64,000 bases of DNA from Eutreptiella sp. 'Long Island Sound 2002' (GCA_964036045.1 OZ038378.1:37262001-37326000), one strand, 5' to 3'. Positions 3,276 to 64,000 are shown, counted from the stretch's first letter. The notes: generated by a model from the letters alone, not told the origin. A program made the numbers and translations.

Positions 3276-5850
3276 GGGTCCTGGTCCTACTATACCTTTT
3301 CAAGTGGATTGTGCTGTCACATCTTTTGGCGCCATCATGCAAGTACCACGTGACCGCTGTTGTTACGTTTTTGTGTACAATATGTGGGCTGCTGTCATGG
3401 GCATGCGTGGTGGCGATTGGTACTATGTGGACGTACATGGCTCCCCACAAGCACCTAAAGTGGGCAGACTGTTTGTAAAACAATGATCATGAGAAGATGT
3501 CCGTCAACGGTTATTCATACCTGACGGCCAACAATGCGGTGGTGCTGATTGTGCTGCTCGGCTTTATATCATTACCAGCCCAGAGGCTATCATGGTTGTG
3601 ATCATGCAGGCACACGGTCTTCGGCCCCAGGATGCTGCTGAAATTTGTCATCGCTAGGATGCTTTTTTGGGGTCTCTGCAGTAATGATCGCAGCCCGAAT
3701 TAATCATGGCACGTGGTGGTGTACGTCCGTGGTGTTGTTCTTGTGTTTACACTGCACAACATAGTAGTCGTAGATGCGCAACGGGTTGATACCATGATCT
3801 ATCGCAGGCGCATGGAGGCAACCAAGATGGGCGCGGCAACGTATGGTTGCATTTGCGGTCGCGTTATGCGCATCGAGGCCGTTCCGGTCCACGGATGGTA
3901 TGCACAACATCTTTCAGGAAACAGCCCTCACACAATATTCATGACCACGGGCTTTCAATGGGAGGACAATTACGGGAAAACGACAGCCAAGCAGCAACCA
4001 CCAGCTAAACCGCCCGGCATGTCCAACCGATTCCTGTTGGCAGCAGGGGCTCCGAGTACCACATTTGCAACTGCACGTGTAGCTGCATGTGCATCCGCAT
4101 GTACATCTTCAACACCGATTATTCAGCAACCACCTGCTAGTGGTCTTCCCTCACAAGCAAAAGTAACAAGTCCCATGATGGTCGGACCTAGTTCTCTATC
4201 AGGCAACACGATTTCGGCATCCACACATGGTCAGTGCTCTGTTATACCACAAGAGTGCACGCTGGTCGAGTATTTGCTGGCAAAGCCCTGGCGGTGCACA
4301 GTTATCCGAAGTGTACACTTGGGGTGCGCTCTGCGCGGTGTTGGAGTCGTAAACGTGTTGCACGCAACACAAAAAATGCAGCAGACCAAACACCATGATA
4401 GCAGTATGTCAAATGTTCATCAACACAGGGGTCCAGAATCCAGAAACTCAATTTGGTGGTGCCGTTTACGGCGCCGGCGCCGTAAACTTACTTGTGATTC
4501 ACAAAACAGGAAGGGTTCGGTGAGGTCTGGGGGAAAAATAGAATAGTTGCTACCCCGCCCTCCCCATTTGCATGTTCTTTCCCACAGGAATTACAGAAAT
4601 GTCCGGAGTAGGACTTCACCAAGAGAACATGACAAGAGGCCTGCCTGAGGCAGGCGAGGTGCAAGGGTGCTAGGGTAGCTGAGGGGTAGGGACAAGACAG
4701 GCAAGTAAGGGGGGGGTTTCAAAAGAGGGGACCTGATTCCATGGCTTTACATCAATGGTGTTGAGAAGGGGTTCAAGGGGGTTAGATTTGGGGTTGGGGA
4801 AATCCACGTATCGCGCAGGAGACAGAGGGTGGCTGCTTTGTGGTCAATTTCGTTACACTGGCACCTTGTGGAGGTGTACAATGCCTCGGTGTATTCTGCA
4901 TGATGCTACATGCTGCATGTGTTGTGGTTTACTTGTCATGTAATGTGTTTTGTTTGCCCAAAAAACAAAAAAAGGGGCGGGGCCATGTCCTTCTCCTCAA
5001 AGCCCCACCTGTCGGTTTGGAGTGTGCCCCAATGCAAATAAGGGGGCTAGTTTTTGGCTCTTTTGCATTGCGGACCCCTCCGCAAGCATGCTCCGTCGGG
5101 CGCGTGATTTGGAATGGTGCCCTAGTACGGATAAAGGGGCCGGGCTGCTCTTGGCCCGGCTGATGATCCTGCTTTGGAACGGGGGGTTAAGACTTGACGG
5201 GGTACTGGGCGGTAAGGCTCCACCCGCCCTAGGAGGACTTGAACTAGCCCCTGGGCTCTGCCTGTGTGGCTTTGCCAATCATGGTCCGGCCACCCGGCTT
5301 GCGAGGATCGCGAAAGCTCTTCCCCAGCAGACAGCAATGGGATTTCCCCGCTGGATGCCTACATTACTACGCGCTTTCGGGTTTTGGAGAGTGGGGCTGG
5401 GTTGGTGTCGTGCGGCCACCACCACAGACACGGAACAAACGCACACCGGGGGTGCCCATCTGCCCCGCTGACAGGTGTTAGAGGAGCCAGGGAACGGGGT
5501 AACAGGGATCGCCAACGGGTTGTATGATTTACAATATATTTTGGCAGGGATTGTAGGTCTGGGGCTCTGCACGGAGTGTGGCTTAGCCGGTAACTACATG
5601 AAGCTGCCTAGCTACTTACACTATGATGATGATGATGATGATGCTGATAAGGTCAAGGAAATACCTTTTGGGGATTTTGGCGCTGCCGTTTACGGTGGTA
5701 GCGCCGTAAAATTTCCAATGATGCTGGCTCCGGGATTGTGTCTAAACGGTATTCGTTGAATTTTTGCTTTCGCCCATCACTACTCCACCACTGTGCTGAG
5801 CTACATTTTTTTGTGTAGCCCATGTGCATTATCAAAAGCCCCCTTGTTGC

Positions 5851-8000
5851 TTAAGTTGCACGAGGTCGCTTCGGAATAGGAGCATCAGGAGGGTCTTCGG
5901 CCCTCCACTTAGCTAGTGGTGCAAGGCGTGCGAGCATAGTGTTGTGTACTCCTGTCGTGGGATTAGGTTCTGGTACCATTTGTGGACCAGGCTTGGGTGT
6001 TGGTTTTGGGGTTGGCTTTGGCCTTTGGCGTGTCAACTGGGTTAGCAGGGTTTCAATCCGGTTCAGCAAATGTTGCATGATGTCTCTCATGCGGTTTGCT
6101 TCTCCGGAGGGTTTCGTGCCAAATACTTCTTGGCTATCCTGTGTTACGCGCGCCTCAGGGGTGCCATCTTTGATCACAATATGTGACAGCAGGTTTTTGA
6201 CCATTTTTACTCCTAGTGTTTTTCCCTTTGTGTGATCAAGGTTCTTCCATGGTCTGTCTGGGAAAACATAGTCCGCTTGCCACTTAGCTTGTGGTGCCGC
6301 CTTAGTGAAAGTCACACCCGCAGGTAAAGGCATGAAAGGGAGCGTTGCCTTTTGTATACCATTGATCAATCTCTGTGCCCGGATGACAATTTGGGCTGGA
6401 AAGGTCCTCGGTATGTGTGGGTCCGTATAGTCCTTTGGCTCATTAGGCTTCATGTTAAGGAATCGGTATTGTTTTTGATGATTGTGAATAATGACAATTG
6501 TGGCATCATCTTCCTTAGCCTGCTGCAGTTGACTCACCGTAGCTTCCTATTTCTCCTCACTGAAAGTGGCACCAGGTAGGGCACCCACATAGGGATCCCA
6601 ACGCAGCACCGCCAATAGTAGTGCATCCATGTACTGCTGTTGACCCCCTCTGGGCCGCAGTGCATACAGGAGAACGGTACAGAAGTGTACCACTGCATAG
6701 GCCTCTTTTCCAGACCACGGTGCGTGTCTCCACCAGTGCAAGGTCCGCGGCTGGTAGCCCATGTAGAAGAGTGCGCGAGCATAGTCTCGGAATACTGTAG
6801 TGAGAACACTTAGGTCTTGCAACTTCATGGCGCAACCACCGTAGATTTCTCTTCCGTGCTGGATGTTCAACTTGGCGTCTCGTAGCAGGGGTAGCACTCA
6901 GCCAGCTGCCAAAAATGCTGCTCGCACCATTTGCTCCATCAGGGAGACTGCAATCTGCACCGTTCGAAGTGCCGTAAGAAAATCCGTAAGAAAGGGGTAG
7001 AAATCGCCGATCCTATTCGGTGACACAGGATTTGTATGAATGCCACACACCAAAGAGCATTGGCGTGTGTGCAAAAAAGCTATCTGTAGCCACTGACACA
7101 TACGGTACGCTATATTGCAATTTTAGCATTCTACAATACAAGTCAACGTCATATAGAACCGGACTGGTACTTTTGCCAGTCCTGGTTCTCCGGTCATCCA
7201 CGTTGGAGCAGACTTCCAACAGTCTGTCCGGGGAGGATATGTTGATGGGTAGGACATCATATGTCCACGATGGCGCCGTAGTCACATTGTATCGCCGAAC
7301 ATCTAGCAGCACACACACTTATTTAAATTGGAGGTGCCACGACTGTACTTCGTCAATCTTCCCACGAATGGAAGGAACTGCGTGCCGTAGCACAGTAGGG
7401 AGTTGCCCAATGGCAGACAGTAACTCAGGCACTGTCTTAACCGCCGTGAATCGTGGTACTCCATCGGAGGGGGCGACAGGTAGCATGGCAACACAGGTCG
7501 CATGAATGGAAATGTTCCGTTGCCGAGGAACGTTCCCACTGTGCCGCCACTTATTGTAGTTGTCTATCCAAGGAACCATGGTATTATCTTTGGCTAGCGC
7601 TACAATTTTCTCGGCGTACAGCAGGGACTCCTCTGCAATGTTGGGTTTTAGACCGTTGACAAGTCTTGTTCTAGCATGTAGGGATGCTTGCTCCCTGGGT
7701 AGATTCTCCAAGCCGGCATCCACATGTTGACTCCGAGCACCAATGCACCATTTCCTGAGCGACGGGAAGCAGGTCGACATGCTTTGGGAAATCAGCGTTG
7801 TCCAACGTGGTCCGTTTCTTGTCCCTCTCCGGGGCCAGTCGCTCCGTGGGTCGTGCATTCCTTTGGTGGATCTGGAAGCTACCTGCCTTAAGTTGAGGAA
7901 CCACTGCACAATTGCATAGCGGCCCCACCATGTAGGGCATCCTGTACCATGTCTTCAACAGTTTCCAGGGTTGACATATCACTCAATGCTTGTAGGTACT
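5851..8000 (-). pseudogene. DDE-type transposase (DN..D..GxWH..E pattern, DUF6589-like/RAG-Chapaev-related, family uncertain), frameshifted; paralogue of 22834-24972
   Basis: Fragments WIDNYNKWRH, VLYDVDLY, PMLFGVWHSYK and SEEK*EA align in order with QFDN*YRRRH, LLMDENVF, PMLYGCWHPYK and PEEPLEA of the 22.8-kb ORF. ORF 5851..6537 continues in frame after the TAG at 6547-6549. Confidence 0.6.
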
Positions 8001-8899
8001 TCAGAGACACAGGCCTTACCGTGCCGTCAATGGGACCTGCAAGCCGTCGTTGGGGCTTAAATAAATTTACGGCTCTGGCGCCGCAACTTGCTACAATTCG
8101 CTCTGAAAAAGCACCCTATCACTTGCATTACTCCGAGTTGTCAATAGGTCTTTGAGCAGACATAATGCAAAAAAGCGGTCCTAAGAAAAAATGGGGCATG
8201 TCAGTTTTTGGGCGCAAACACTTACGAGGGGATTTACCCCCGTTTTAGGCTGGTGCGCATTGTTTGTTGTGTTCATACGGCAATTACTGACGGTGGACTG
8301 TGTGAAACCGCGATAAGCCAGAATCTCACATTCACAGTACCATGGCTGTTAGGTGTTGTTTTTTTGGTGTTACTAGTCTTTTGGTTCTTTTTCATTTACA
8401 TTGCTCCACATGGAAATGGCACCGTGGCACCATGTGCTTTTTTTGCGCAATGCGGCAATCCCACCAGGCCTGGAGTTGGGTCCTGTTGTGTGCTCACCTC
8501 GAGACTGGTTTCCATCGCTTGTAGGTCTCCCCTGAGGATAGCATAGGATACGTTTTGGGGTGCCATTTGGGAACGCATCTAGAGGGGGCCCGATGGGGGC
8601 GTCAGGTGCAGCGAACACTGCTGCCAAAAGGCTGGCGTGGGCCTTTTTCTATCTGGTAGGACACAAAGTGTCAACCCACGGCGGGCCCCGGTGCCCTCCA
8701 GCCCTCGCTCCAGAATCGCAGCAACCAGAGGACGAACCAAATGCAATAGACGCCCCCCTCCCCCCCCTTCTGGCTAACACGGAAACTGCCTGCGCGCACG
8801 ACGACTACGACGGGTTCAATAGTGGCCGACATGAGCGAATCAACTTAGCTAGACACATAGCTATGACACAAGCGTTGCGTACAATGCGAAACAACGTTA

Positions 8900-9507
8900 T
8901 TGTTTACTCACCATTTCTTTCTCCTCCGCAGCAGTTCGTTTTATGACCTCGTCACTGGTACCAACCTCCATTATTTTTACTCCACTGGCCAAAATGACCA
9001 CAAACAACATATCCCCATCTAAATGAGGAATGCCGGTAGTGGCAGCTTGTCGCGGCACTGGCCGTGTTCGTAATTGATGTTCCACGCAACGTGGTCCACG
9101 CTCACTTGAAACCCTGCCTTCAAAATCCACCGGTTGAGGTCAGTTCCGAAGGCCTCGTTCACGTGGATTTTCGGATCTGGACTAGTGGTGTCGCCTTTCC
9201 TTTTTTGGCCCCTAGCCTCTTAAAGAGGCTCACCCTCTTTTTGAGACGGGATACCGTACTGCGGAGCAGCTGTCTCCCACAGCCGGTGTCCCTGTGGCCC
9301 CATCATTCCCGTCATGTCAACGTCACCCTCGTTGTTTTTCGTCCCCGTTATCAGTGTCCTCCCCCAGCTGGAGCCCCACGTACTGCGGTACGTACTTTCC
9401 AATGTTTGTATGCGGCCCTGCAGACTGTTCGTCAAGGTCACTGTCATATTTGTAATATGTTGTGCTCCAATTACAAAGAGAAGATCATCTAAACGGAAAA
9501 TATCCAT
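8900..9507 (-). pseudogene. Degenerate coding region of unknown function, divergent from the 9.6-kb gene
   Basis: Protein-like reading across ORFs 9220..9507 and 8897..9130 with a stop/frameshift; ends at a gtgagt donor-like site. No known motif. Confidence 0.25.
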
Positions 9508-9559
9508 AATTTACGGCGCCGCCGCCGTAAAAATTTACGGCGGCGGCGGCGTAAATGAA

Positions 9560-11576
9560 GCACAAACCGTCCTTTTAGGCTGTCATACCTGCCATGTCCT
9601 TCAATATTACTTGAATCCTCTGGATAGGATCCCCGGTGATGCTATGAGGCGATACAATGGAATAGCACTCGTTCTAGCCGCTTCAAGCCACGATCATAAA
9701 TTTGTGGATGCTGTTGGGAGCATCAATATGCGCTACGAGCGTGGTTCCGCGCCCGTCCGGGCTTGTGGTTTAACAGACTACAGTACTAGTCTGCCCAGGG
9801 ACGATGTTCAAGAACTGACACAATAGTTAGTAGATCGGCCTTTGTCTGTGACGGTTTCCAAGTTTAACAACTATCTGAAGTTCCTCAAGTGCCAGAGGAA
9901 CATGATTTGGAACATTTGTCGCCCAAAAAATGACAATGTAGCACCTGAGAATAGTATGTTCCCTGTCATTTTTTGTGTGTCTACTCGTACTCAGTGCAGG
10001 CCATGGCCTTCATTCTGTATGTCCTCACTCTTAGAGACTCTGGTTCTTTGCCATAATTTGGCGGACCAGCTTTATGCGAAGCATGCAGAATAAATCACCC
10101 CTAGGGATGGCCTTTGGGGGAGAGCATACGTTGGGTTGCGCCTTGGCAAGGCAGACTGGCCAGAGGTCCCCACTTGAGAGCCTCGTATGGCCTGACCCGG
10201 CCTTTGCTACCTTGCGTCAGTGGCTGCTCACCCCTCAAAGTGGGACAACAGCAGCAGCAGGACCGAGTACTGGCTCCAAGGACATCATCACCTTCCAAGC
10301 AGAGTTTGGGGACTGGCGGAAGATAGTGATTGGGGGAGGTGATATGGGTACTCTTGCAGCCGGGAGAAACATCCACTGTGTAGTGGTGGAGTGTGAACAG
10401 GATGTTCCATTTCGCTAGGATTTGCTCCGCATCACCAACGGGGGAACCCCCGTCATGCCGGTTGGCAAGGCCACTGTAGTTCAGGACTCGGTCGACCAAA
10501 TTACCGGTGACGGGGCCTCCGAGATGTGTAATTTCGCTGCCAACAATACAATGTACTTGGGGTCACAGGAAGAAAGGCGGCCGTTTCTGCCTAACTCCAA
10601 GGCCACCGGACTGGGAGGCACTCTCAGTCTTATGCTCGTTAGCCGTGAGGCTGCATCCCTGCCATCATACATCGGGAGTAAGCTAGGGCTTCGCCCCAGC
10701 ATTATTGCATTGCTGTTGCTCCGGGTCGGGCTTAAGCCGGACGTGGAGACAGGCAATTTTTTTTGCCTCGCAATGTGGCTGCATCCAAAGCGCAACTGCG
10801 GCTTGGATGTTGTAGCTCAGGTTGCCACTGCTTTTCCCAAGTGGCAGGTCTGTGCGGTTGCTGCAGCCAAGTGTCTCCGGCATTTCTCCAAAGACATGGA
10901 GATTGCCAAGAATGCTAATGCAGCCACTGATGACCATGAGCTTAGCCATGAAATTGGCCTCCTGTGCAAGAGCACTATTATTGACAGCAGCAACGTCCAC
11001 CGTCTGACTGTAGAGCACTTGGCGCAAAGGCGTCGACCGGTTGCTGCCCTTGTCAAGAAGCACAAGGAGACCGAAAGGGAGAGGAAGAAGAATACCAAGG
11101 AGGAAGCAAAGGCAGCTGCAAAACTTGTTGCCAAAGCACCCAAGACTGCGACCGCTGCCCAACAGCATCAGCAACAGGCGCAAGGAGATGCTCCAGGTAG
11201 GCAGCTGGAGAGGGGAGCAGGCCATCCTCCCACTGGGGGACTAGGCAAGGGCATCCTAGCACTTGCCGCCGGCACCCCAGGAAAGAGGGGAAAGGGCGAG
11301 CAGGCTCGACAGAATTCCGAGCATGACAACCTGGACATCCAAAGCGCCAGGGTTGGCGGTGCTACCCCTGCCCGTCTTTCCTCCGGCAACAGCGGAAACA
11401 ACACTCCGGGGGCCAGCCCTGGCAAAAGGAAGCAGACCCGTCACCTTGGGCTGAGGGCCACACGTGCTAAACCCGGTGCTTCAACTTCTGACCTAAAGCC
11501 TCGTGCTGCTGACGCTGAGGTGATGGGGGAGACTGAGCTGTTGTCCCTTTTTGGACGAGCCCAGGATGAGTTCTAG
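9560..11576 (+). pseudogene. Accessory gene A: ParB-like GxH motif(?), DPxF motif, Lys/Glu-rich tail; probable homologue of genes B and C
   Basis: VLLGCHTCH (cf. ILSGQHIAE in gene B); LVWPDPAFATL (cf. MWSDPTYAPL in gene B). ORFs 10074..10418 and 10422..11576 are in frame across a single TAG. Confidence 0.4.
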
Positions 11577-12607
11577 GTGGCAGCCTAGGGATTAATGTTG
11601 TAGTACCCCTGCGTGCCTAACGAAATAGCATTGTAGGCTACCTATACAATCTATACATTACGTGTGAGGAATGGAGACTTAGATGGTGTTTGGTATTCAC
11701 GGCGCTGCCGCCGTACTTTTTAGGGCTCTGGTGCTGTAAACTGTGAATTTGCTATCAAATGAGGTAATGGACCATACTTGTTGTCCAAATTTGTCCAACT
11801 GTGTCCAACGGCCAAGGCAATGTGTGGCTTTTTTCCTCTAAGATATATTTGCATGATGACACAGAGGTTTCTTTTTTTTATTCGGTACTCAAGAGCACAT
11901 CAATGGCCGCTTCTTTTGGTTGGAGTGAGAGAACCTGATGTACTGCATGATTTTTATACTGCATTCTCCGCTTGCTTGGCAACGTTATCTGTGCTATGTC
12001 GCTATGCTTCTGCTGCTGGCTGCTGTTTGGTAATTGTGGGCCATGTCGGAACAGTGGTGTGTGTGGGATTGGGGGGGGCACCTAGGGCCTACTCAGCTTG
12101 TCCTTTGTGTACCCCCCTGGTGCACTCAAAGTATACTTTTGTACGCCCCCCCTTTACAGCCATTACTCTATTTTCGTTTACGGCGCTGGCGCCGTAAAAT
12201 TTAAGGGTGCCCCTCCCTGAAAGCAACGTTCCCGTCGGGGCTAGTATCCCCCCCAAAAAACAGCTGTATCTTTTTCACTTCTGCCCAATAGGGTCGTATT
12301 GTGTCCCATGTCTTTTCCAAGTGTGCCAAATAGTGTACACAAGCTGCCTCCAAGCCATCACTGAAATCAACCAAGAGGTAAAACAGTGTAGAATGGAGGT
12401 GACAATTGCTTCGCTAATTTGTCATTGATTGAAACAATGCAACCACACAAGGTGTCCATCCATGAATGATGTTTTTTTTTAAATATCGGCTTCGACGAAA
12501 GGTGAAAAAGCCAACATCCTGTCCAAATTTTTACGGCAACAGCGCCGTATATTTTCCGAGCGTAAGTGGTTTGATTTCGGGGGGTTATTGGCCGTCGGCT
12601 GGTTTTT

Positions 12608-14785: not shown

Positions 14786-14827
14786 GATGCAGCTCTTTGT
14801 GACGTTGTTTCCCTCCCTTCTGCGGAA

Positions 14828-17110: not shown

Positions 17111-17220
17111 GTGGTGTTTTTCAAGGGGTTTCATGTGAAAACTTGTGGCTTTCAGGGGTGGGTTGGGGTTTTGGAATGTCCCCAAAGGGATCTCAATCCC
17201 TAGTCCAAGAGGATTCGACC

Positions 17221-18118: not shown

Positions 18119-18388
18119 GTGTGTGTGTGTGTGTGTGAGTGCTTGCGTGCGTGTGTAGTGGTGCCCATGCGCATATGCGCAAGTGTAGATGGTTTGTTCG
18201 TTCTTGGTTTCTCCCATTTAATGTGTTTATATGTCTTCTAGTGTGTGTGTGTGGGGGGGGTTGCTTGGATCGATGCGTGGGTGAAGGTGTCTTTGTGCGT
18301 GAGTCTTTGTGAGTGTGTGACTGCATCCTTTGGTTTCTGGTTGCCTAGGTTCGTATGTGTATGTGGATTCGTGAATGTGTGTACATGC

Positions 18389-18390
<2 letters not shown>

Positions 18391-18457
<67 letters not shown>
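18391..18457. repeat. (GT)n microsatellite, ~33 units
   Basis: Uninterrupted gt run. Confidence 0.95.
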
Positions 18458-18458
<1 letters not shown>

Positions 18459-20925: not shown

Positions 20926-22833
20926 GCAAGCGTTCGGGCGCTCATTGAGTGCTCATTGAGCCGTTTGCTGCCTCACAAAGCGCTCATTGCGCTGTTTCGC
21001 GCGCTCACCCAGCGCACACTCAGCGCGCCAGACGGCGAAGCGAGCGCTCACTTAGCGCGCCAAATGGCTCAAGGAGCGCTCAATGAGGGCTCACTCATGG
21101 TTTACTGTCACTGTACACTGTCACTGTACACTGTCCATGTACATTGTCAATGCTGTCACTGTCAGCTGTCACTGTAAATGGTACATTGTATTCTGGCATT
21201 GTACGCTGTCACTGCACACTGCACACCGCCACTGCACACTGTCACTATATAGTGTCACTGCACATTTTCACTGTACACTGTACACTGTACACTGTACCCT
21301 GTACTCTGTACACTGTACTCCACAACGGCCAAGACTCTACACTAGCACTCTACAATGTCACTCTACAATCACTGTATGCTCTCACTGTACACTGTGATTG
21401 TACACTGTCACTGTCCACTGTCACGGTAAACTTGGTCCGATTTTGTTTGGGAGGGGGTGGATGGTAATTTGAGCCCCCCTCTTTGCAAATCTTGAACCCC
21501 CCCCCCCCCCACAACTACAGCCAGCACCCAAAGAACAGCTGCAGCCACAGTGAAAGCTGCAACTACAGCCCTCGCCACAGCCAGGGCCACACACACTGGC
21601 ACAACCACAACTGAATCCACACACAACACAGCTTGCAGAGCACACCCACACCCACACCCACACCCACACCCACACCCACACCGACAGCCACACCCACAAC
21701 CAAAGCCCCAACCACAACACTTACCATAACCACACCCACAACGAGAGCTACCACAACGGCCATAGCAACAACCTCACGCAACCCTAGAACCACAGCCACA
21801 ACCACAAACACAACCATACCTACATCCGCAGCCACAAACACAATGTTATGCACACACAATCAAAGCCGATGCCACGCAACACCAAAACCAACAACAGCAT
21901 CCAAAACAACAGCCGCAAAAGCTGCAAAAGCTGCAATACACACACACGCACACACATTGGTACACGCACACACACACACACCTGCACGTACACACATTCA
22001 GGAATCCACACACGCACAGAAACCTAGGCAACCAAAACCCAACGAGTGCAGTCACACACGCACAGTGACGCACAAGGACACCTTCACCCACACATTGATC
22101 CAAGCAAGCCCCCCCCCCCCCCGACTCGCACACAAACATACATACAAACACACTAAATGAGAGAAACCAAGAGCGAACAAACCATGTACACTTGCGCACA
22201 TGCGCATGGGCGCAAACACACACACACAACCACACACAATCTTAGACGGCCCAAGTTGCCCACCCCGGTAAATCAGCCCAAAACACCCAAAAAGGGCCAT
22301 TTTGGCCGGTGGGAAATTTCATGGCCTGTTTTTTAGTCATTCTGAATTTGACTGTTTGACAGCCTGTTTTTTTGGTTCTCATATCCACGCACACAAAGCC
22401 AGGTGACTGCGCATGGTCAATTTTTACGCTTCAGTGAACAAGTTTTGCTTTGTGCTGTGTTATCTTTGTCCACCTATGTACCTTTCTCTTGGAATTTCGA
22501 AAAGTGTCTAGATCCAGACACTCTTTGAAATTCCACCCCTGTCACAACGAGTTTTTGAGGTTGCAGTGTCTGGTTCCAGACAAACTAAACAATTTTCAAC
22601 TTTTTAGGGGGGGGGTCACCAGGTGTCTGTCCGGAGTGTCATACGTCCTATGTACACCCCCATAACATGGAGAATGTGTCTGGTTCCGGACATTTTGCTG
22701 ACCTTCCGTGATTAAGATCCTCATTTGAGTGAACAGTGTCTGGTTTTAGACACTCTCCACCAATTGTTTGGTCACTGAGCAGGTCTGTTTCGTTGTTGTT
22801 CACTGTTTCGTTTAGTCTGGTTCTGTTCCACTG

Positions 22834-24972
22834 TTGATGAGCCAGGTGACCAGTGCTGCGACAGATCCCTTTGGTCTCCTGCGTGACTTCTTACGTGGAG
22901 CGAAGTATGGTACACCGCTGGAGCTTATGGATGCCGCTTTACGCGATGAGGAACCAGGTGCAGCCCTGCTTGTGGAGGTCTGCGCACAGATGAGGGTCAA
23001 CCGGCGAACCAGATGCAGTATGGCAACGTTGATCAAAGATCATGGGCAAACACCGTGGCCAAGGTGGTATGGAGTGTTTGCACGCAAGGTGTACGCAATG
23101 ATGCAACTGTGTCGGAAGATGGCTCTGCCACAAGAAAAGGCTGTTGGCTCAATGATAAGTGCATCCAGGGGGATGCGGAGACAATTGTCACATGCAGGTC
23201 TTGCCGCGGGCCGGTTACCGCCTTTGGGGCAACAAGCACATGCCAGAACAAACGCCATCTGGAGATCAATGGCAGGGAAGCAGGTGGTGGTGCAGTTTGA
23301 CAACTAGTATCGCAGACGGCACTGTGGTGACCCGGTTCGACCCGATTGCTGTCTGAACGTCAGTGCCATGTCAGTGTTGCATACAACTGCGATTCCTATG
23401 TACCCGGGTGTCCCTACACTTGATGATCTTCTCCAACGCATCCCGCAAACAGCACAGACCATAGTAGCCAGTTTCCGGGAGTTCGCACGAGCGGTGGACG
23501 CTTTGAGGCGAGATTCACCAGAGGCCCAATACGTACGGGTTCCACTAGATGTGCACCGGGACAGCACTCGTTCACTCCAATGGTACCCCGTGATGCTAGC
23601 CGACCTGGTCTCCAGCTCCAATGAGGACTTGCTCCACATCATGGAACAATGCCTAGCCATTCAGGTTCACACACGCCACGTCATGCCCCTTCTGATGGAT
23701 GAAAATGTATTCTACAAAGACGCCAAGTTCATCTACAGTCGCACGTACAACCCCTTTAAGTTGTCTGAGCACTATGCCACTCTCCCAATGCTGTATGGCT
23801 GCTGGCACCCTTATAAGTATGTGTGTACCATCATCCACCGTAAGTTCTTCCCCATATTGGGCTACCTTGGGCAGCAAGTGCCCGCGGTAGATGAAGAGAT
23901 CATGTGCTTCCCGAAGCTGTTGCACATTGAGAAGCAATTTTGTGCCCTACTGTTAGCCACACCCAACGTTGAGGACCGCATTGTACACACGGAGACTTCA
24001 ATTATGCAGTTTCCAGAGGCATCCCGCAAGCTACCACTCGTATGGTTGACTGGACTGAAGAACCTCTTGCACTTCTACATTCCGGCTGCGTTCCTCCTTG
24101 GAAACTTGGTTCGTGACTGCAACTGGGATGGTCGACCAGCAGGGACAGGCGATACGGCCCGCAAAGTATTGGAGTTGAGTTTGGTATTGATTGTAGCCTT
24201 GACAATGGACACTGACTGTAACGTCCCCTACGTACGCACCCTTTGTGTCGCCCTTCGGTTGTGGTTACCCCGGAATGACACCGACCCGGGCCGTTGTTAT
24301 CCCGAGGAGCCCCTGGAGGCCATGTTGAGTCGTCTCTGATCTAGCTGCCGCGCATAACCCTAGATGAAGACTTTTGACCAGACATTGGACCTGTTTTTGA
24401 GCATGGCACCACCAAAGCGCGGGGAAAAGAAGACGCGGGGGCAGATCCGCAGTGGACCGGTTGCGATCATGTCGTCACGGCTACGCAGGTTCCTGTTGGC
24501 CATTACAACGAACCGCATGGTCCATGTTGAATGGAACAGTGGAAAGAAGGTAGCATTCACCGCTGTCCCTCACGAGTTGAAATTCCCATGGCAACCACTG
24601 GACAACGGTGGTGTGGCCCTGTACCAGAGACTGTTGACTAGATCACTCTCCACATTGACAGGCGCAGCGCGTTCGCCTACCAATGAGGTCTCACGGTTGT
24701 TGAGAACCATTGTTCCAGGCAGAGACCCCCGCGAGCATGCAGGCCGAGATGCACAAGCTTAGCGGGTGCGGGACGCAGCAATTGTGGTAGCAGATGATGA
24801 CGATGAGGCCCCGGAAGCTGCAATTGTCTCGGATTCAAGTTCACACCGGTCCGTGGGGGATTTGATAGTGGACGTGGACGCACAGGATGATGAACTACCA
24901 CCTGTTGTCCTACTGCAAGAAATGGAGGAGTATGAGGTTGTGAGTCTGGAGGATGACTCAATGGACTGCTGA
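22834..24972 (+). pseudogene. DDE-type transposase of element B (DN..D..GxWH..E, acidic tail), five in-frame stops, no frameshift
   Basis: ORFs 22834..23307, 23368..24339, 24364..24762 and 24766..24972 are all in one frame. Motifs VVVQFDN, PLLMDENVFYK, LYGCWHPYKY, YPEEPLEAML. Confidence 0.7.
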
Positions 24973-25724
24973 CACCCCGCCGAAGTGGCCTGGGCACGTC
25001 AAAGGTGTGTGTCTGGAACCAGACGCAGGTCTGGAGTCGGTTACCACAGCAGCATCGGGGTACTCCCGCAGGGCCCACTAATGTCAACCAACGCAGTGCT
25101 GGACTGATGAGATGCGCGCGTACGTGCACTGTTGCATTGCTGTACATCCCTATTTCACCGGAAAACCACAGCATGTGACCCTGACCAACTGAATACCCGG
25201 CTTAGGAAGCCACCATGCATGTGTGTCTGGAACCAGACACGAACTGTTTGTACCCCCTCTAGTGCCCAAAGAAGTACCGTAGCCGTCTGGTACCAGACAA
25301 TTAATGATTTTTCACCCATGTCATCTGCTAAAGTCAAGGTGTTGTGTCTGCAACCAGACAGACTGTGTGTTGTGCCCTCCATTGCCTGCAACATCATCTG
25401 CTCTGTTCTGGGAAATGCTAGAATCACATTGGGTAGCAAGCTACCTCGGAATTGGACTGCAAATGTGTCTAGAAACAGCCACTGACTGTTTATGGCCTGT
25501 CAATTGCCAGAACAGTACATAGTTGTGTGGAACGAGACATTAAATTGTTTCACTCCGGTTGCACACTTCAAAAGCAGACTGTTGTGTCTGGAACCAGACA
25601 AACTGTGTGTTTTACACCCCTGTGTATTGCACATGATGTGGTCTGAGTGTGAAAACGGTATGCTCACGTCGGGACCCCTGGAAAGTTAGAATCACATTGC
25701 TAAAAGGCCCGCCTTTGTGTCATT

Positions 25725-28719
25725 TTGCGTCTTGCGCCCCGTTGGTTCCAACGGTCTGATCTTTCACAAGGTAGCATTGATCCCTCTGCAAACCCCTCAA
25801 TTGATCTGGCATCCCAATTCAGTGCCCTGGACGATGCCCCCTCCAAGCACAAGCGGAAACGTGGTGACACAGCAAAGGGGAAAGATGCTCAAGTGAAACT
25901 TGGTGACCATACTAAAGACCTGGAGGTCCCACTGCCCCTCAGCAGACTGCAATGGGACAAACAAAGGGAGCATGGCCAAATCAGAGTGTTGGATGAAGAT
26001 CTTGTCCTGGACAAGTGGACAGAACTACGCAGGAATCCACCAGGTGCAGCCAAAATCCGAATCATAGTGTGGCGTGCCGCAGTGGAGCAGTACTGGATCT
26101 TATCGGGGCAGCATATCGCCGAGGCCTGTCGACGAATCTCACGGGAGTACATGAATGCTCATCTGCAACCGCCAACATGGTCAGTGCAATTTCTTGCTCA
26201 AGTGGTTCGTACGAATGTCTCTCTACACATATGGGAGTCAATCGCTAGCACGTCACAGGTATATCGAATGTGACAGTGCACTGCGACACTGCATGCCCAC
26301 ACCAGTGAAATATCCTGCGCCTGTGACGTGCATCTCGACGTGCCAGTTCTCCTTGGTGACCGGCCGCTTCGTTGGGGGGGGGGATAACTGCTGTGACCAT
26401 CCGTCACATCACAGGCTTTGCAGTCTGCCACGACCCTGCCGAAGCTGTCCACACGGATGCAACTTCTGCGTGTTGAGCTGGACCGCGATTAACGGGAGGA
26501 GAAATCCATACGAGAACACCTGGGAGTGCTGTACGTGAAGGGTGGCTATACACTGAAGGAGGGGACACTGGTATGCCTGGTGTTGCACAGGGTGGCAGTA
26601 CAGGAACTATGTGCACATGCGTCCCTGGCCAGGACAGTTGTCGCATGCAACAACGAAGGCTGTCACAGTTGTCTGGAACCAGACACTTGATGTATTTTTA
26701 TCCGTATCAAAGCCTCTGCCAGGACCTCCATGTCTGGAACCAGACAACATTTCAGTGATGCGGCCTGTCAAGCAGAATTCCTCCTGATAGTGTCTGGAAG
26801 CAGACACAATTTTTTGTATCCCTCTCAAAGCCTGTACCTCGACCACGATGTGTGGAACCAAACAACATTTCACTGATGCGGCTTGTCAAAGCAGAATTCC
26901 TCCCGTTGTGTCTGCTAACACCCCTGTCTGCTCTGCTGGACACTGTCAGAAAAGCCTGGTTTCCGATTGCCGCGTGGGTGCAAGTGATGGGGGATAAGGC
27001 TGTGGCTGCCGTCGATGGATTGGAGAAGCGTGGACTGCCAGTAAAGTTGCACGTTTGGAAGTGCATCGAGGCCCCCATCCCACCAGACCTCGAGGAGGTT
27101 ACGCAGTACATGGGCTCCAGCAATGTGTCACTGCCAATGATTACGAAAAGGGCAAAGCAACTGAACGCTGCACGTCTGTGGGAACATCATCTCTGCCACC
27201 CGGACAACGACCTGGATGACCCCAGTCGCAAAACGCTTGCAGAACGGGCCCGCTGTGAACACAGTCTCTTGTCGAAGACCCATGTCACCTTCAAGGCGTA
27301 CAATTGCAAGTGGTTTGAGAAGAACTGCTAGCCCCCATGGAAGTATGTTGTCACTGCTGCAATGTGGAGTGACCCCACGTATGCTCCCCTCGGTGATGCC
27401 TTGAAACGTCCCCTGGTGAACCCTGAGGTCAAGATCGCTGCTGATGTCAACTTCATCACCGTGAACATCGGGTCTGAGGCCCCAGAGGCGGGGGTGACCG
27501 ACAGCAAGTCCCTGGATGGGGTCATGCATATTACTGGGATGGCATCTGGTACGCCGCTGCACTCTACGGTGGCCAACATGCCGTATTGCCTCATCATTGT
27601 TGAAGTTCCAAAGGGACATATCGAAGGCATTCGTTCCGTTGTCAGCCGCAATTTGGTATCTGGGACGCTTGTTCTCATTGTCGGCTCCGCTTGTGACGTC
27701 CTGGGAGTGCTGGATGGTCTCCGAAAGTTGCAAGACAACGAGGGGTTGACAACAATTTGCGTGGCCTGCTTTATTCTGGGATCTCTCACACAGCAGTAGT
27801 CGATGGGATTCACTGAGCTATGGATTGTTTCCAAAGATCCGCTACCCAAGAAGGTATTGCTGTCTGCTGTTGCTACCTGCTGCCTGCTACCATAGTCACG
27901 TTGGGTGCACCGTTGAATCCTAAAGTTTGTCTGGAACCAGACACGTATGAGGCACAATGCGTCCTCAAAAAGGTAAATTGTGGGAAACTGTCTGGAACGA
28001 GACAACATCAGCCAGTCCAACTGCAGCGGTAGGGGTCTCAGACTCACTGTTCCCTTATACAGGTGCCTCGCTACTTTGCGTTTTCTCGTGGTCCAATGGT
28101 GAACCAGCTGTGTACGGAGGTTGTTGGGTTTATCATGCACCACTCGGCGGATGCAGTACCCTGAGAAGCAAGTACCCTGTGGTTCCTGGTGATCAGTAGT
28201 TCTGTACAGCTGGCCTGCAGTCTGGCAGTGCGCATGCCAGTACCCATCAGTGTGGTTCTGGGTTTGCCCACGGAGCAGGAGTCTATTGCAGACGTTGGTG
28301 CCCTCGTATGCAGCAATTTACGCATTGCTGATGGGCTGAGCCCTATTCCCTGGAATGCAGTGTTTGAAAATTTCGCGGACGGGTGCCCTGTGGACTGCAG
28401 CTGTGTGCCTGAGAAGGCAGAGGGAGAGCAGGAGTCTGAGGAGGAAGTGGAAGAGGTGGGCGCCACCCTAGAGAACGCTGTGTATGGTACACCAAAGCAA
28501 TCACGGGGCCCTGGCAAAAAAGGTGGTCGCACACGCAAAGGAGACGAGAACAGAGCCTCCGGATCACAGTCAAAAGGCAAAGGCAACAAAAAAGCCCGGG
28601 CATCACCTCCTGACGAGTGTGCAGCTGCGGGAACCGATTCTCAGCCGTCTGCTTCCAAGAAGGCCAAGATTGGGTTTCAGGCATGGAAGGAACGGTTCAA
28701 TGGCTCCAAAAAGAATTAA
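25725..28719 (+). pseudogene. Accessory gene B: spliced; N-terminal ParB/Srx-like domain, putative degenerate beta-class DNA methyltransferase-like region, acidic/Lys-rich tail
   Basis: GQIRVLDEDLV..IRIIVW..YWILSGQH resembles the ParB-fold GxH(R) box. MWSDPTY and VANMPY resemble motif IV (DPPY/NPPY). The GT-AG intron 27854-28062 joins KDPLPKK|VPRYFAF in frame; further donors at 26259 and 26571, where exon phases are not fully resolved. Confidence 0.5.
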
Positions 28720-29400
28720 ACTTGCTCTGTTGTAGTTGCTGTTGGTTGCACACTGTTGTTGTAAGCTTGCTCAGTGACCACGATATCTATTCATAAGATA
28801 TAAACGTTGTGGCACCCTGTTGGCGTGCCAGTCTGCGCTCTGGGTCCCAGTGGCCTGTTTTGGCCTTTTTCCCTTCCCGATCACGAGACTGACAGTCCCT
28901 TGTCACTTTTTTATGTCATTCGGGTGCGGACCACAGTTCTTTTTGTGGAATACAACAATTTTTCACCAAGTTACGCGTTCTGTGTCTGGAACCAGGCAAC
29001 TGTTTGCGATTATTGTCCCTGTGCAGCAGGTTTTGGTGAGCTCTGTTTGTTTCCAGACAAACTTCAGTATTTCACTGTCTGCAGAACAAATTTGGATGAA
29101 AATGGTATGTGTCGACGAGTAGTGCCTCCGCTGGTGTAGTGAGATTGAACCGTGCAGATACACACATGCATTCCGTGGGGTTCCTCCTCACAATTTGACT
29201 GTTTTTCCCATAGTTCACAGGGCCCATCCTCAAGTTTGTGTTGTGCGCAAATTGCCAAAAACGTATATGGGGGTAGTCAAAAACGAGCGGAAGAAGACGT
29301 GCGCTACTTGTTGCTAAAAATTCACCACTGTAGGACGCGTTTTTGATGACCATCATCTGCGACATTTTTTTCGGGGGCGCGTTGGGGGGGGGGGGGGGGG

Positions 29401-59802: not shown

Positions 59803-60993
59803 ATGGTGAATTGGCAGGAGGTGGGCAAGATGTGGCCGTTGCCCCACCCCCATGCGGTGCGCCTACTGCGTGGGTTGGTGTGGGGGCAGCACTACCGCCA
59901 CAGCAACCCCCAGTGCGAAGGCGGCATGCCCGGGAGCTTTGAGCTGCGCGAGGATATGGGCGCCGACCGCCTGCAGGCAGTGGAAGACTGGCTGCGGGTG
60001 GAAGGATATGCCTACCGCTTCCGCCAGAAGCGCTGGAGGGTCTGGACCCGCCTGGACAGACCCGGCAAAGGGCTGCGCCCTGACGGGATTGAGGCGGACG
60101 AGAACCCCAACGAGTACCCGTCGGGCGCCACGATCAACGTCTCTATGTGGGACATGATCGAGGAGAAGTTCCCGGAACAGGGGAACGAGCGCACGCTGCA
60201 GGGCAGCAACAGCAGCGCGTCCCCGGGGAAGGAGAAGCAGTCCGCCGGGGACAAGAAGCGGGACAAGAAATGGCGGGAGTACCAGGAATCCCTGGCCCCC
60301 GAAGCCGCCCAAGCCGCCAAGGGCGGAACCCCAGCCCCCAGCCCCCAACGGGCCAGTGGCGGTCACCACCCCGGCCACACCACCCTTGGCGACTTCCTCG
60401 AAGTCGCCAAGAAGGCTAAGGCCAAGCCCCGTCCGCTGCACCTGAGGAAGTCAGGCCTCAGCAGCGACGTGGAGTCGGCCCACCGTTGGAGGATGCCGGA
60501 CGACCAGGCCAGCTCCAGCAGCAGCGTCGCTCCGGACCAAAGGGACGTGGCCCGCGCCTGCGAGCGCGCCTGTGGGGTGCCCTGCAACCTTCGGGTTGCC
60601 CGGCAACGGGCCACGCAGCAGAACGCTGCCGTGTAGGGCGCCGTCGGCATCGCCCAGGAGGAGGCCACAGATTGGGGCAGAGGCATGGCCTTCCACGCCT
60701 CGACCGTGGCGGCCATTGCGGCCGGACTCACGGCTGCAGCCGCCCAGGAGGCAGCGACTGCCCGGGTCAGGAGTGAGGTGGCGGCAACCGCCCAGGAAGC
60801 CCGCCTGGCCCAGGAGGCCATTGTCCGTAAGGAGGCCGAGGTGAAAGTGCTGGAAGAGGCGCTTGCCCAAGGGAGGCCAAAGAAGGAGGCGGAGGAAAGG
60901 GTCCACGCCGAAGCAACGGCCAAGGCCCAAGCGGACGCCGCCAGGAACTTAGCCCACGCAAACTGCACCCCCTTTTGGAAGAGAAGGACCTAA
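59803..60993 (+). pseudogene. GC-rich ~396-codon ORF with one internal TAG and a C-terminal coiled coil; possible retroelement ORF1
   Basis: ORFs 59803..60636 and 60685..60993 are in the same frame with only the TAG at 60634-60636 between them. No diagnostic motif. Confidence 0.35.
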
Positions 60994-61148
60994 AAAATGA
61001 CCGCCCAAATAACTATTTTTTTTGGACATTTGCAACACACATGGCCCAGATGCCACCGAAAAAATACAATTTTACCCAATTTGCTGCTTTTTTCCACTTT
61101 TTGCTTATCAAAATAAACTATTATTTTGTCTGATTTGAGGGGTGTGTT

Positions 61149-64000
61149 TTACCAATCTTGTCGTTTTTGTATTTCAAAAGCCAACTGGTGCGTGCCTGTT
61201 CGGGAGCTCATTTTCAAAATATGACATTCTGCGGGTCTCCAGTTGCACCTATGTTTGTCCTGCGAAATAAATTGCTTTTTTGTGTACCTGAGTGCGCGAG
61301 GCCTCGCGCACTCAAGGTCATGGAAACAATTGTGTACAGAGGGCAACAAAAACAGGACACGAAGTGCACAACGTACAAACACTGAGATAAAAGCTTGGCA
61401 AAAATGTACAACCCTTTAAGGGCATATAATTGCATTCGCGTCGAAGGCGAGCGCGCGAGCCCTCGCGCACTCATGACTGCAAAAAGAGGCGTAACACTTG
61501 GGTTAATGGTGACTTACTTCTTCTTAGGTCCAGCAACCTTAGCCAACCTGGAACCCAGGCTTCTTGCTGTTGTACTTGTCCCACTTGGAGAGGCAACGGT
61601 ACCTCGAGACGGCAGGGTACCAGAACGCGAGGGCGGCTTGAACTCTGCAGTAGCACTGGCAGCAGTCTTCGCTTTCTTCTTGGACTGTTCCTTACCAGAG
61701 TCGGGGCTGCTTGCATCGAAGTGAGAGGCGGATGCCCGCTTGCGCTTCTGCTGGGTCTCCAGTACTTGCTCCAGATCGTCTTCTTCTGACTCCTCGTCAG
61801 TATCGTCGTCGTCTGATTCCGCGGGCTTGTCCGATTCCTTCTCTTTCCCTTTTGCTTGCTTCTTGGTACTCGAGGGTGTTCCTTTTCCGGCTGCAGTACC
61901 CTGAGTTGGTACAACTTTGGCAGTCTTCTTCATCTTGGCTTGCATTGGCAAGGTAGGTGCAGGCGCACCAGGCTCAGTGTCTTCAGCGGGGGCCTCAGTC
62001 ACGACATCTTGCTGGACGGCTTCTGCAGCATGCACCTGCTGGTGCCCTTCATGCCCTCGTTTGCTGTCCAAAACCCACAGTGGAATGCCACGCTGGAGCC
62101 ACTCTTCTTGAGTATCCCAAGTTGCAGCTGTTGCTCCCTGCTCCGTCTGATCGGCCTCCAGCATGTACCGCATCACGATTGCATGCTGCAGAGCACCTCC
62201 AACGGCATTCCCTAGGTCCTTTTGCTTGATCGTTGACACAGCCAGAAACGCCACTTTAGTTTTGAGGTCAGACATCGCAATCTTTGCGGCCATGGCAGGC
62301 GTGTCGTCCACAACAACCACTGCATCAGGAAGCCCACTGCACAAAACGTATCTGTCCAGGTACCACAGCACGTGAATCAGAGGCATGAAACCGCCGAGGT
62401 TCTTCTCTTGCATCTCTTCGAAATGTCCAGCGGAATACGACACATAGTTCGGCAACTGTAAATGTGATGAATATAGACGAATAACGGAGGCAGCAGTGCG
62501 CGAGGCCTCGCGCACACAACGGCATCGTAACAATCGAAAGAAGCAGATATACCTGCTTATCCCAGCGACTCGTTGTTCCGATCCACATACAGTGCTCGTC
62601 GAACTGATACGTACTGCTGGTCACGGGACCCGATAACCAAGAGTACACCGGCAACCGAACATGGTAGAATGGCACTGTGGTTGGATCCTTGTCCTTCTCC
62701 ATACGCCAGAGCCTCTGCATTTCGCGGCCAATACGGTGCACAACATCAGCCTCGCCATAGAAAATGACGTCTTTCCCCAGCATCATCACATCGAACAGCC
62801 ACTTCGGAACAAATCCTGGAGAGTCGTATTCAATGAAAAGGTCAGCGTTGATGATCCACAACGGGTACTGCAGATCCCGGAAACGGCCTGGCGGTGTCTC
62901 TTCAATATTCTCAATACGGCAGGCTGTCAAAGCGTATTTGATCCCTTGCTCGTCCGACTTGGAGACATTGATCACATCGCCATTACTGAGCTGTGTCTGT
63001 GAAGGTGCCGATGATGGTGCCTCAACCTTCCTTTGCAGTTGTTTCCGCACGGCCAACGTCTGTGGTAATGGAGGTGCGCCCTTGTCCCCAGTGCGCCACA
63101 GAGGTGCAGTGAGCAACGTCTTCCATTTTGGCCAGGGCGACCGAAACTTCGTACTTTTTGCGTCCACCCAATAACCCCAATTTCCAAGCCCAATTTTCAA
63201 TTGCGGCGTGCCCAGTGCTGCGACTTCTGCTCGGATCTTCGCATCGGCAGCTGTACGGATGTGACAAACGTGGTGAAGTGCGCGAGCCCTCGCGCACTGC
63301 AGCTGCGACACTGACGCATACCTGCGGTCTGGTTGACATGCTGCGTATTGTCCGGATGGTCAAGATGGAAAATAACCCATTGTTCCGTAATCTGCGCGTC
63401 AATGTAGTTCTGGGTGGTCTTCAAGGTCGAGTCCTTCAGGTTCATGTGCGCACAGACTTTCTGCAATAGGCTCGGTAGATGCAGCCCCTCCAGCCTCTTG
63501 AAGGCATTCCTTGTAACGTCCTCTTTCTTGCTCTTACTCTCGAGGTTCCTCATACCAGTAACCGCCTCACGGCCGCAGTAATACGCCAGGGAGAAGATGT
63601 CCCTCCAATTCTTGAATGTCGAGTCCTGCGGGGGGAGACAGTGTCATGGAGTGCGCGAGGCCTCGCGCACTGTAACCGTGCGATACACGAATACATACTG
63701 TATGTCCTGCTTCCTCCAAAGCCTCGGGTGCAAGAAACGCAGAGTTGACGGCAGCTTGGACAACAGCAATCTTGAACCTCTCGAAATCTTGTGGCTCTTT
63801 TTCCCGCTTCTGATCCTCAATGTACAACAACATGTTGTCCAGCGCCTCGGACAGCGGAATCCACGTCACAGACTGGCTGCCAGCTTGTTGCAATCCTGCA
63901 ACCTTGGCACGGATCCTCCAAGGCGTTTCGTACTTCAGAATGTCAACGTAGCAAAACTCCTGCCAATCCTCCAATTCTTTGCCTTCTTCGAGACGCTGTT
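61149..64000 (-). CDS. Accessory gene C (5' end outside window), six exons, no internal stops after splicing; homologue of gene B
   Basis: Exons >64000-63699, 63625-63322, 63250-62553, 62455-61518, 61413-61377, 61259-61149; all five GT-AG junctions keep frame. PKWKTLLTAPLW resembles PPWKYVVTAAMW of gene B; ILKYETPWRIRAKVAGLQQ resembles VVRTNVSLHIWESIASTSQ; both have an acidic/Lys-rich tail. Confidence 0.75.
61260..61376 (-). other. GT-AG intron (117 nt, phase 0) containing the perfect 26-bp palindrome C at 61289-61314
   Basis: gtacgt...ttcgcag; frame-preserving, but the flanking frame is also open without splicing. Confidence 0.55.
61414..61517 (-). other. GT-AG intron (104 nt, phase 2) containing palindrome C at 61449-61472
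   Basis: gtaagt...ttaaag; the apparent ORF stop (TAA) lies inside the donor. An alternative acceptor at tttgcag is possible. Confidence 0.6.
62456..62552 (-). other. GT-AG intron (97 nt, phase 0) containing palindrome C at 62496-62515
   Basis: gtatat...ttacag; joins RWDKQ|LPNYVSY. Confidence 0.85.
63251..63321 (-). other. GT-AG intron (71 nt, phase 1) containing palindrome C at 63277-63298
   Basis: gtatgc...gtacag; joins NQTA|AADAKIRA. Confidence 0.85.
63626..63698 (-). other. GT-AG intron (73 nt, phase 0) containing palindrome C at 63650-63671
   Basis: gtatgt...ccgcag; joins EAGHT|DSTFKNW. Confidence 0.85.

Follow-up and report, generated by a model that had tools for sequence, protein, structure and literature searches.

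What is read from a palindrome that is repeated many times within one transposon and gives way to a different palindrome in the next? This question is raised by a 64,000-nucleotide stretch of the Eutreptiella sp. 'Long Island Sound 2002' assembly (GCA_964036045.1 OZ038378.1:37262001-37326000), referred to below as the window, in which three loci, A, B and C, each carry a palindrome of their own around an accessory gene, here termed gene 2. The window has a G+C content of ~50% and reads as eukaryotic, since gene 2 of C has short GT..AG introns. Our analysis identified the three loci as members of a multi-family, unclassified group of two-gene cut-and-paste DNA transposons (A decayed, B complete, C cut at the window end), with a common anatomy of CTTAG inverted ends, a 5-bp target duplication, gene 1 (a presumed transposase), gene 2 and private palindromes. 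The palindromes are family-specific and appear to be selected, and their similarity follows that of the gene 2 proteins across seven families. In the reading that we favor, at about even chances, they would act as DNA and be recognized by a dimeric protein that the element itself encodes, most probably the product of gene 2; each family would thereby have a private address.

The seven families compared comprise A-C in the window and D-G from fetched loci: two further B copies (L001, L002), a D copy from another metagenome (L003), E (L007, L008), F (L009-L011), G (the second element in L010) and a derivative of C (L012). Copies related to the window elements are found on megabase contigs of one European Nucleotide Archive (ENA) assembly, ERZ25074135. 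The original prediction had treated positions 4464-64000 as a single system; ~31 kb of this span (29426-60947) proved to be unrelated to it.

Ends, genes and mobility of the elements

The limits of element B were set by comparison with L001 (93% identity) and L002 (91%) and enclose 7.18 kb rather than 13 kb. The three B copies are flanked by the 5-bp target duplications ACAAT (the window copy, at 22236-22240 and 29421-25), ACCCT and TGTTT. Altogether, six insertions of families B, E and C have the termini CTTAG...CTAAG with 5-bp duplications; in family E, whose element measures 6.5 kb, the ends are CTTAGGCGTCACAAGTTGCCCAC and the duplications GGTTA and TATCG (L007, L008). The left tip of B is similar to the tips of E and C, while the palindromes of these three families are unrelated. 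Ends were also looked for in element A, which carries in-frame stops, and none were found.

Two ~1-kb inverted arms (17269-18118 and 29421-30354) were considered as the ends of B and rejected, as no other copy has them and B is bounded by different ends with a target duplication. The arms thus belong to an older inverted-repeat structure, within which B lies as a nested insertion. In addition to B, the arms enclose a 3.9-kb foldback (18222-22146), a large near-palindromic structure with arms that are 82-93% complementary and with 7/14/21-bp GTGTGCA-type and 13-bp satellite repeats.

Positions 8436-12364 of L012 hold a 3.9-kb deletion derivative of C, in which the beginning of gene 1 is fused to the last part of gene 2 exon 2; it has perfect ends, seven palindromes and a target duplication of its own (CCAGT). 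As this derivative, with its own ends and duplication, is 99.8% identical to the window copy, family C transposed very recently, and mobilization extended to a copy without intact versions of the two genes.

Gene 1 is intronless and ~740 amino acids long; an intact copy (737 amino acids) is present in family E (L008), and for B a 534-amino-acid open stretch exists as P0001. The A and B open reading frames (ORFs) are paralogous (25% identity over 244 amino acids, tblastn E 2.6e-9), as had been claimed for the GxWH-bearing ORFs that stand beside gene 2 in both elements. The motifs [IV]x[FI]DN, PLLxD, GxWHxYK, CNWxGR and SEExxEAxLSR are kept in A, B and E and form a D..D..E pattern in which a long insert precedes the E; the N-terminal part is conserved between B and E. 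This pattern, combined with the presence of inverted ends and target duplications, leads us to presume that gene 1 encodes a DDE transposase. No Pfam, PDB or other model matched it, including a PDB search with the gene 1 profile. An assignment to DUF6589 (PF20231) was dropped, being an Atlas feature lead only (score 0.95, low recognition) for which hmmscan finds nothing. One cluster of family E gene 1 proteins has 267 member sequences, which points to a recent burst. In the F copy of L009, a 976-amino-acid ORF (11714-14644) with a weak match to Mutator-like elements (MULE) is inserted between gene 1 and gene 2. More generally, scans of all ORFs against Pfam, NCBIfam and PHROG revealed no significant family, an Rfam scan of the whole window gave no hit, and the proteins retrieved by word-based searches were all copies in this one assembly that bear no Pfam label.

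The gene 2 products of B and C are clearly homologous and that of A is probably a decayed homolog, as judged from BLASTP and profile E-values. BLASTP aligned B and C over 137 residues (E 2e-7) that include the HPDN and WPxWKxxxTAxxW blocks, so that the sequence blocks originally noticed in both reflect real homology. The B exons 2-3 form a single 304-amino-acid ORF in L002 (the window copy has TAG at 27329 where L002 has TGG); an exhaustive HMMER search with this ORF as query yielded 177 representatives at E<=1e-3, and a profile built from 164 of them was run against all 1,404 six-frame ORFs of the window. It matched exons 2 and 3 of C (E 1.5e-6 and 1.8e-5, respectively) and the A ORF at 9827-10090 (E 0.0015), with sub-threshold colinear matches in A at 10035-10415 and 10419-11573. 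Thus, all three proteins align by profile methods, A marginally so, in keeping with the weaker relationship proposed for it. The charged tails described for the three genes are present. On the other hand, the GxH box ascribed to A (GGEH, ~10110, + strand) is probably not the GQH box of the other families, as the ParB-profile matches in A lie only on the other strand. These sole matches (9052-9180 and 9433-9483, both - strand) differ from the remainder of gene 2 in orientation and also break colinearity with it; they may reflect a scrambled copy or chance. Spliced at its GT..AG borders, gene 2 of C gives one open frame of 747 amino acids to the window end. Introns are also predicted in gene 2 of A and B, the splice sites of B intron 1 being approximate, as frame logic alone could not fix their exact positions. 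Contigs from public runs, all of them DNA, contained no GT..AG joints.

Palindromes and gene 2 across seven families

Seven sites of the palindrome TTTACGGCGCnnGCGCCGTAAA are found in A (at <=3 mismatches; none in shuffles), 16 sites of GTGTCTGGnnCCAGACAC in B, where they cluster at ~60-61 bp spacing, and five sites of GTGCGCGAGGCCTCGCGCAC in C (61292-63670), compared with 0-0.5 matches expected from shuffled sequence. Each type is exclusive: within the ~230 kb of the window and fetched loci, no palindrome was found outside its own element. The multiple copies of a different palindrome per element, in introns or spacers, which had attracted attention to the locus are therefore real. Each element has 5-18 copies of an 18-22-bp palindrome, in arrays that lie close to either end, in the spacer separating the two genes, and within gene 2 introns and the 3' region of that gene; the number varies by copy (14-18 in B). 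The four left-end sites of B have a TT center and are inverted with respect to its other sites. In gene 2 of C, each of the three introns (73, 71 and 97 nt) has a palindrome in its middle. Within one element only the 18-22 bp are alike, and the 25-bp flanks are near random (31-37% identity); therefore, the palindromes are not recent duplicates. An origin as parts of longer duplicated units that seeded introns was likewise rejected, given the unrelated flanks and an intron position common to four families.

When protein identity is measured in the shared gene 2 domain (A being too diverged to measure), a graded series emerges. B subfamilies at 64% and 53% identity carry the same B palindrome in decayed form. 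At 46-48% identity, the palindromes of E (CTGGCCGAAATTTCGGCCAG, from L007 and L008) and F (CTGGGCGAAATTTCGCCCAG, from L009-L011) differ at one position and its mirror, the E form being present in all 25 of the 25 E sites. At 36-38%, B and G (GGTGCTGGnnCCAGCACC), whose clade has support of 83/97, have CTGGnnCCAG and a 2-nt spacer in common. At 26-29%, D (GTGGCGAAATTTCGCCAC) and E have a common CGAAATTTCG center, and at 13-20%, in the comparison of C with all others, the palindromes are unrelated. The original prediction of a co-evolving protein-site pair thus holds insofar as motif type tracks protein clade across the seven families; its choice of reader is less secure, as gene 2 and the transposase compete for that role.

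An intron at profile position ~79 of gene 2 is found in C, E, F and G (B is without it), and in each of these families it holds that family's own palindrome. Moreover, the sites are conserved islands in otherwise unalignable non-coding DNA. Because an orthologous intron holds a family-specific palindrome and the change between E and F is mirrored, the sites have been kept in place and replaced in concert across the whole element, with their dyad symmetry preserved. Such a pattern is the mark of a reader that is dimeric, recognizes a specific sequence and evolves in step with the sites it binds. The coordinates of all these features are collected in Table 1.

Table 1. Positions of the elements, genes and palindromes in the window
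Feature	Position	Strand	Basis
Element A, old decayed copy	4465..12551 (span of 7 palindromes)	.	palindrome matches
A palindromes	4465, 5689, 8066, 9510, 9534, 12177, 12530	.	pattern match
A gene 1, in pieces; motifs WIDN, VLYD, MLFGVWHSYK	5851..7909	-	tblastn vs B gene 1
A gene 2, part matching B exons 2-4, in-frame stops; WPDPAFATL, VVVECE strand, charged tail	9827..11576	+	profile matches
Element B, complete 7,180-bp copy	22241..29420	+	same limits in L001, L002
B left terminal inverted repeat, 21 bp, CTTAGACGGCCCAAGTTGCCC	22241..22261	+	terminal comparison
B right terminal inverted repeat	29400..29420	-	terminal comparison
B palindromes	22504-28999	.	4 left end, 7 intergenic, 3 intron 1, 2 intron 2, 1 right end
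B gene 1, putative DDE transposase, stop-broken in window copy	22834..24762	+	ORFs, alignment
B gene 2	25725..28719	+	ORFs, copy comparison, profile
B gene 2 exon 1, ParB/sulfiredoxin-like, GQH box	to ~26258	+	sequence pattern
B gene 2 exons 2-3, helical part and alpha/beta domain	~26950-27799	+	ORF in L002, model
B gene 2 last exon, charged tail	~28189-28719	+	ORF
Element C, 3' part, rest beyond window	60948..64000	-	L012 ends at same base
C terminal repeat CTTAGCCCACGCAAACTGCACCC	60948-60970	-	perfect inverted ends in L012
C palindromes, one per intron	63651, 63278, 62496	.	pattern match
C palindromes after stop codon	61451, 61292	.	pattern match
C gene 2, cut by window end	61514..63998	-	GT..AG borders, profile
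C gene 2 exons	63998-63699, 63625-63322, 63250-62553, 62455-61514	-	open frame
C gene 2 introns	63698-63626, 63321-63251, 62552-62456	-	GT..AG borders

Several rearrangements were observed around the palindromes. The E and F copies differ by 0.6-1.1 kb inversions in gene 2 (L007 7786-8863 versus L008 9026-7949; L010 10952-11522 versus L011 11476-10913), which the palindromes may promote. Contigs of public DNA runs join B palindromes pairwise (25240/26810, 25600/26812, 28998/26806), representing either deletion or rearranged variants or an assembly collapse at the repeated site. Elsewhere in the window, a 466-amino-acid ORF with an RNase H domain (46531-47931, - strand, E 3e-24) is probably a retroelement fragment, and five tandem copies of an 80-bp unit occupy 36633-37113.

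Candidate readers of the palindromes

Exon 1 of gene 2 displays the pattern LPLSRLQWD...GQIR...IRIIVW...YWILSGQHIAEA, which resembles the ParB/sulfiredoxin core. A profile of this first domain from families B, E, F and G had sulfiredoxins as all six of its best PDB matches (E 0.04-0.08), in alignments of 59-61 residues that place SGQHI of gene 2 over the GGCHR active-site helix; a PDB search with the ParB-like profile of B only gave nothing. Among the Atlas features of this domain, ParB_N accounts for 11 of 40 matches (score 0.92), and the PHROG family 'ParB-like partition protein' matches the GQH region only (30 residues, E 0.39). GQH[IV]xxA is found in B, E, F and G, the arginines of the GERRxRA cytidine triphosphate (CTP)-binding motif being replaced. 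These converging but individually marginal lines of evidence suggest that the first domain is ParB/sulfiredoxin (Srx)-like.

In the favored reading, a dimer of the gene 2 protein would read the palindromes of its own family and mark or gather the DNA of its own element; such marking would direct a shared type of transposase, regulation or anti-silencing to that family only. We infer here the action of the sites as DNA, the identity of the reader and its purpose. Four points favor gene 2 as the reader. Although the palindromes of B and E are unrelated, these families have conserved tips and a conserved N-terminal part of gene 1, as would be expected if the transposase recognized the tips and a different protein the palindromes. 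The internal sites crowd around and inside gene 2, and the ParB-type domain of its product is followed by a helical region. Finally, in red algae inverted-repeat arrays accompany a ParB-like gene across different types of transposon and transposase (10.1101/2025.02.11.637652).

A number of observations weigh against this assignment. Because a single element carries the sites along with both genes, their co-divergence does not by itself tell which protein is the reader, and the two genes have diverged to a similar extent (33-35% identity for gene 1 and 24-28% for gene 2 between B and E; 44-56% and 46-48%, respectively, between E and F). The tracking is not perfectly graded either, the D and E/F palindromes sharing the CGAAATTTCG core at just 20-29% protein identity. 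The ParB-likeness of gene 2 is marginal: hmmscan of the B and E exons found nothing in Pfam at E<=10 and nothing in NCBIfam, and the AlphaFold model of the ParB-like exon, built on a shallow alignment of close copies, has a predicted local distance difference test (pLDDT) score of 38. Furthermore, the N-terminal domain of a canonical ParB is not its sequence reader, and gene 2 is without a demonstrated helix-turn-helix. Lastly, a comparison of recent B copies showed palindromes and the remaining non-coding DNA to be conserved to the same degree (0.861 versus 0.864). This equal decay is as expected for dead copies, yet it is no support, and deeper comparisons were used because recent B copies are uninformative on this point.

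The strong rival is that the transposase itself binds the palindromes, at subterminal and internal positions, comparable to the hexamers of Ac or the 12-bp motifs of En/Spm, with gene 2 as an accessory gene of some other role. We consider this less probable than the favored reading. In its favor, arrays lie within ~500 bp of both ends, an inverted orientation such as that of the left-end B sites is commonly seen in subterminal repeats, the co-divergence of gene 1 with the sites is as strong as that of gene 2, and the mobilized deletion derivative of C kept its ends and palindromes. Three of the points raised above speak against it, namely the B/E conservation of tips and gene 1 N-terminal region alongside unrelated palindromes, the position of most internal sites around and inside gene 2 rather than gene 1, and the company of red-algal arrays with the ParB-like gene across transposase types.

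The remaining alternatives are far less probable. One of them, quite improbable in our view, would have the palindromes fold into hairpins in gene 2 RNA, within its introns and untranslated regions, and act in splicing, mRNA stability or small RNA production, for example, rather than as DNA sites. It would accommodate the placement of the C sites (one in the middle of each intron, two after the stop codon), the orthologous intron that always keeps one palindrome and the dyad symmetry preserved through a mirrored change. However, many sites lie upstream of gene 1 and at the far ends at 60-70 bp spacing, arms with a 0-2 nt spacer make poor hairpins, the introns have ordinary GT..AG borders, and the sequence is uniform within a family beyond what pairing requires, which a constraint on structure only would not need. 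Slightly less probable still is that there is no reader and that the palindromes are a self-homogenizing mini-satellite or recombination-prone sequence spreading within each element by gene conversion. The inversions and deletions between copies, with breakpoints near palindromes, and the variable number of sites (14-18 in B) would be in keeping with this, but the palindrome alone is conserved with no repeat unit, the orthologous intron position is kept across families at <20-30% protein identity, and dyad symmetry is preserved through change.

The second part of gene 2 bears on a last alternative. The AlphaFold model of exons 2-3 (pLDDT 81.6) comprises a helical part and an alpha/beta domain, the latter modeled in part only because an intron splits it. 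Foldseek searches with the alpha/beta model reached a best E of 0.018, with precorrin methyltransferase, METTL3 and M1.HpyAVI at E 0.02-0.06. VIA matched Trm14 (Z 6.8), MboIIA (Z 5.1) and M.RsrI (Z 4.7), its best match overall being an Alba-like half domain (Z 8.0), above all methyltransferases. Eight of the ten Atlas structure rows are methyltransferases, with template modeling (TM) scores of 0.37-0.57 by target and ~0.3 by query. Exons 2-3 had no Pfam match, no PDB match to an exon-2/3 profile and no usable match in an Atlas feature search, and no oxygenase domain dependent on 2-oxoglutarate (2OG) was found in gene 2 by Pfam or fold match. Neither the DPPY-type motif (D/N/S)PP(Y/F/W) nor the GxGxG motif (FxGxG, S-adenosylmethionine-binding) is conserved among the 164 gene 2 relatives, whose strand-end motif is E-[VLP]-P-x-x-[FY]. 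Given its weak fold resemblance, the modeled domain would best be described as worn-out methyltransferase-like. Overall, the label of a ParB/methyltransferase-like gene survives as a set of converging marginal ParB/Srx signs and a partial likeness to the methyltransferase fold, while no family model matches it and the DPPY and GxGxG motifs are missing. The least probable reading of all is thus that the gene 2 product is a ParB-methyltransferase with enzymatic activity, whose methylation of the palindromes would serve to mark or protect the element, as the idea of protective methylation had it: class I methyltransferases are among the best matches in all three structure searches and ParB-methyltransferase genes are known in algal transposons (PMC12477816), but active methylation is unlikely with the catalytic motifs not conserved among these relatives, no Pfam or PDB sequence match, an Alba-like best structural match, a B palindrome without CpG and no base motif shared between families.

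Related systems and biological meaning

The closest published parallel is provided by red-algal Plavaka (EnSpm/CACTA) elements, in which the accessory gene PAG3, with a ParB-like start, lies beside tandem inverted-repeat arrays and for which Petroll et al. (2025) propose that the accessory protein binds its own element (10.1101/2025.02.11.637652). Both systems combine a transposase, a ParB-like accessory gene and adjoining inverted-repeat arrays. In contrast to the elements described here, with two genes (7.18 kb in B) and a degenerate methyltransferase-like second domain, the red-algal elements are 17-19 kb long and have three accessory genes, and PAG3 has a 2OG-oxygenase domain. The transposase of the present group is, moreover, unclassified, and the sites extend over ends, spacer and introns, with a turnover from one family to the next that is documented here. 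The CA..TG-type termini and 2-3-bp target duplications of EnSpm/CACTA-Plavaka elements (PMC12730594) are not found in the six insertions with CTTAG...CTAAG ends and 5-bp duplications. A second parallel is Sola1-1_Ec32 of Ectocarpus, which carries a ParB-DNA methyltransferase accessory gene (PMC12477816, which cites Iyer, Abhiman and Aravind 2011 for such genes). Here too a ParB-like domain precedes a methyltransferase-type domain inside a DNA transposon; however, the N6/N4 methyltransferase domains of that gene are recognizable, unlike the Pfam-negative domain without catalytic motifs in gene 2, and cognate palindromes are not described there.

Among better-known transposons, En/Spm (CACTA), whose TnpA reads 12-bp subterminal motifs, is likewise a two-protein system with short, repeated, family-specific motifs, and VANDAL elements encode a DNA-binding protein, VANC, that targets its own family for hypomethylation. 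They differ from the present group in having no sequence relation to it, in their target duplications (3 bp versus 5 bp here) and in that the ends here are not CACTA and the sites are perfect palindromes, found also in introns. Transib/RAG1-like elements have in common with it the 5-bp duplication and a D..D..E spacing in which a long insert precedes the E, but the ends here are not CACTATG-like and gene 1 has no Pfam or PDB match to the RAG1 core. A separate ORF of the window (1180-2394, + strand) that had been called RAG1/Transib-like has no Pfam match at E<=1.

The arrangement also resembles bacterial ParB/parS, in which several 16-22-bp palindromes, specific to a replicon family, accompany a ParB-fold protein on the same element, and plasmid incompatibility based on private parS sites offers a case for comparison. 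No ParA partner was found, the complete 7.18-kb B and 6.5-kb E holding only gene 1 and gene 2, and the arginines of GERRxRA are replaced by GQH[IV]. As the present elements are eukaryotic nuclear transposons, partition is not the expected role. Tentatively, and with less confidence than for the reading of the sites as such, we would extend the comparison to the whole transposon group, which may run on a ParB/parS-like address code: in each family an accessory protein would read a private palindrome, retained even within orthologous introns, 'incompatibility groups' would decide which elements, deletion derivatives included, are mobilized or protected, and a change of specificity would involve the proteins and all sites of an element together.

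Algal transposons with ParB-like accessory genes, and the proposal that these bind their own element, were already published in 2025 (10.1101/2025.02.11.637652; PMC12477816). The new observations are that the three families of the window belong to a common group defined by CTTAG ends and 5-bp duplications, that palindromes form a graded series over seven families, a mirrored change among its steps, that an orthologous intron carries sites specific to each family, that the tips are similar despite wholly different palindromes, and that a deletion derivative was freshly mobilized. If the palindromes are indeed private docking sites, they would provide a natural series of seven matched pairs of protein and DNA site, ranging in graded steps from identical to unrelated, from which it can be learned how the code for self-recognition is altered in a mobile element that stays functional. 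The own-transposon-binding proposal made in 2025 for red and brown algae would then become directly testable in a matrix of binding assays. Such docking sites would also explain how many related transposon families coexist in one very repeat-rich genome without cross-mobilizing.

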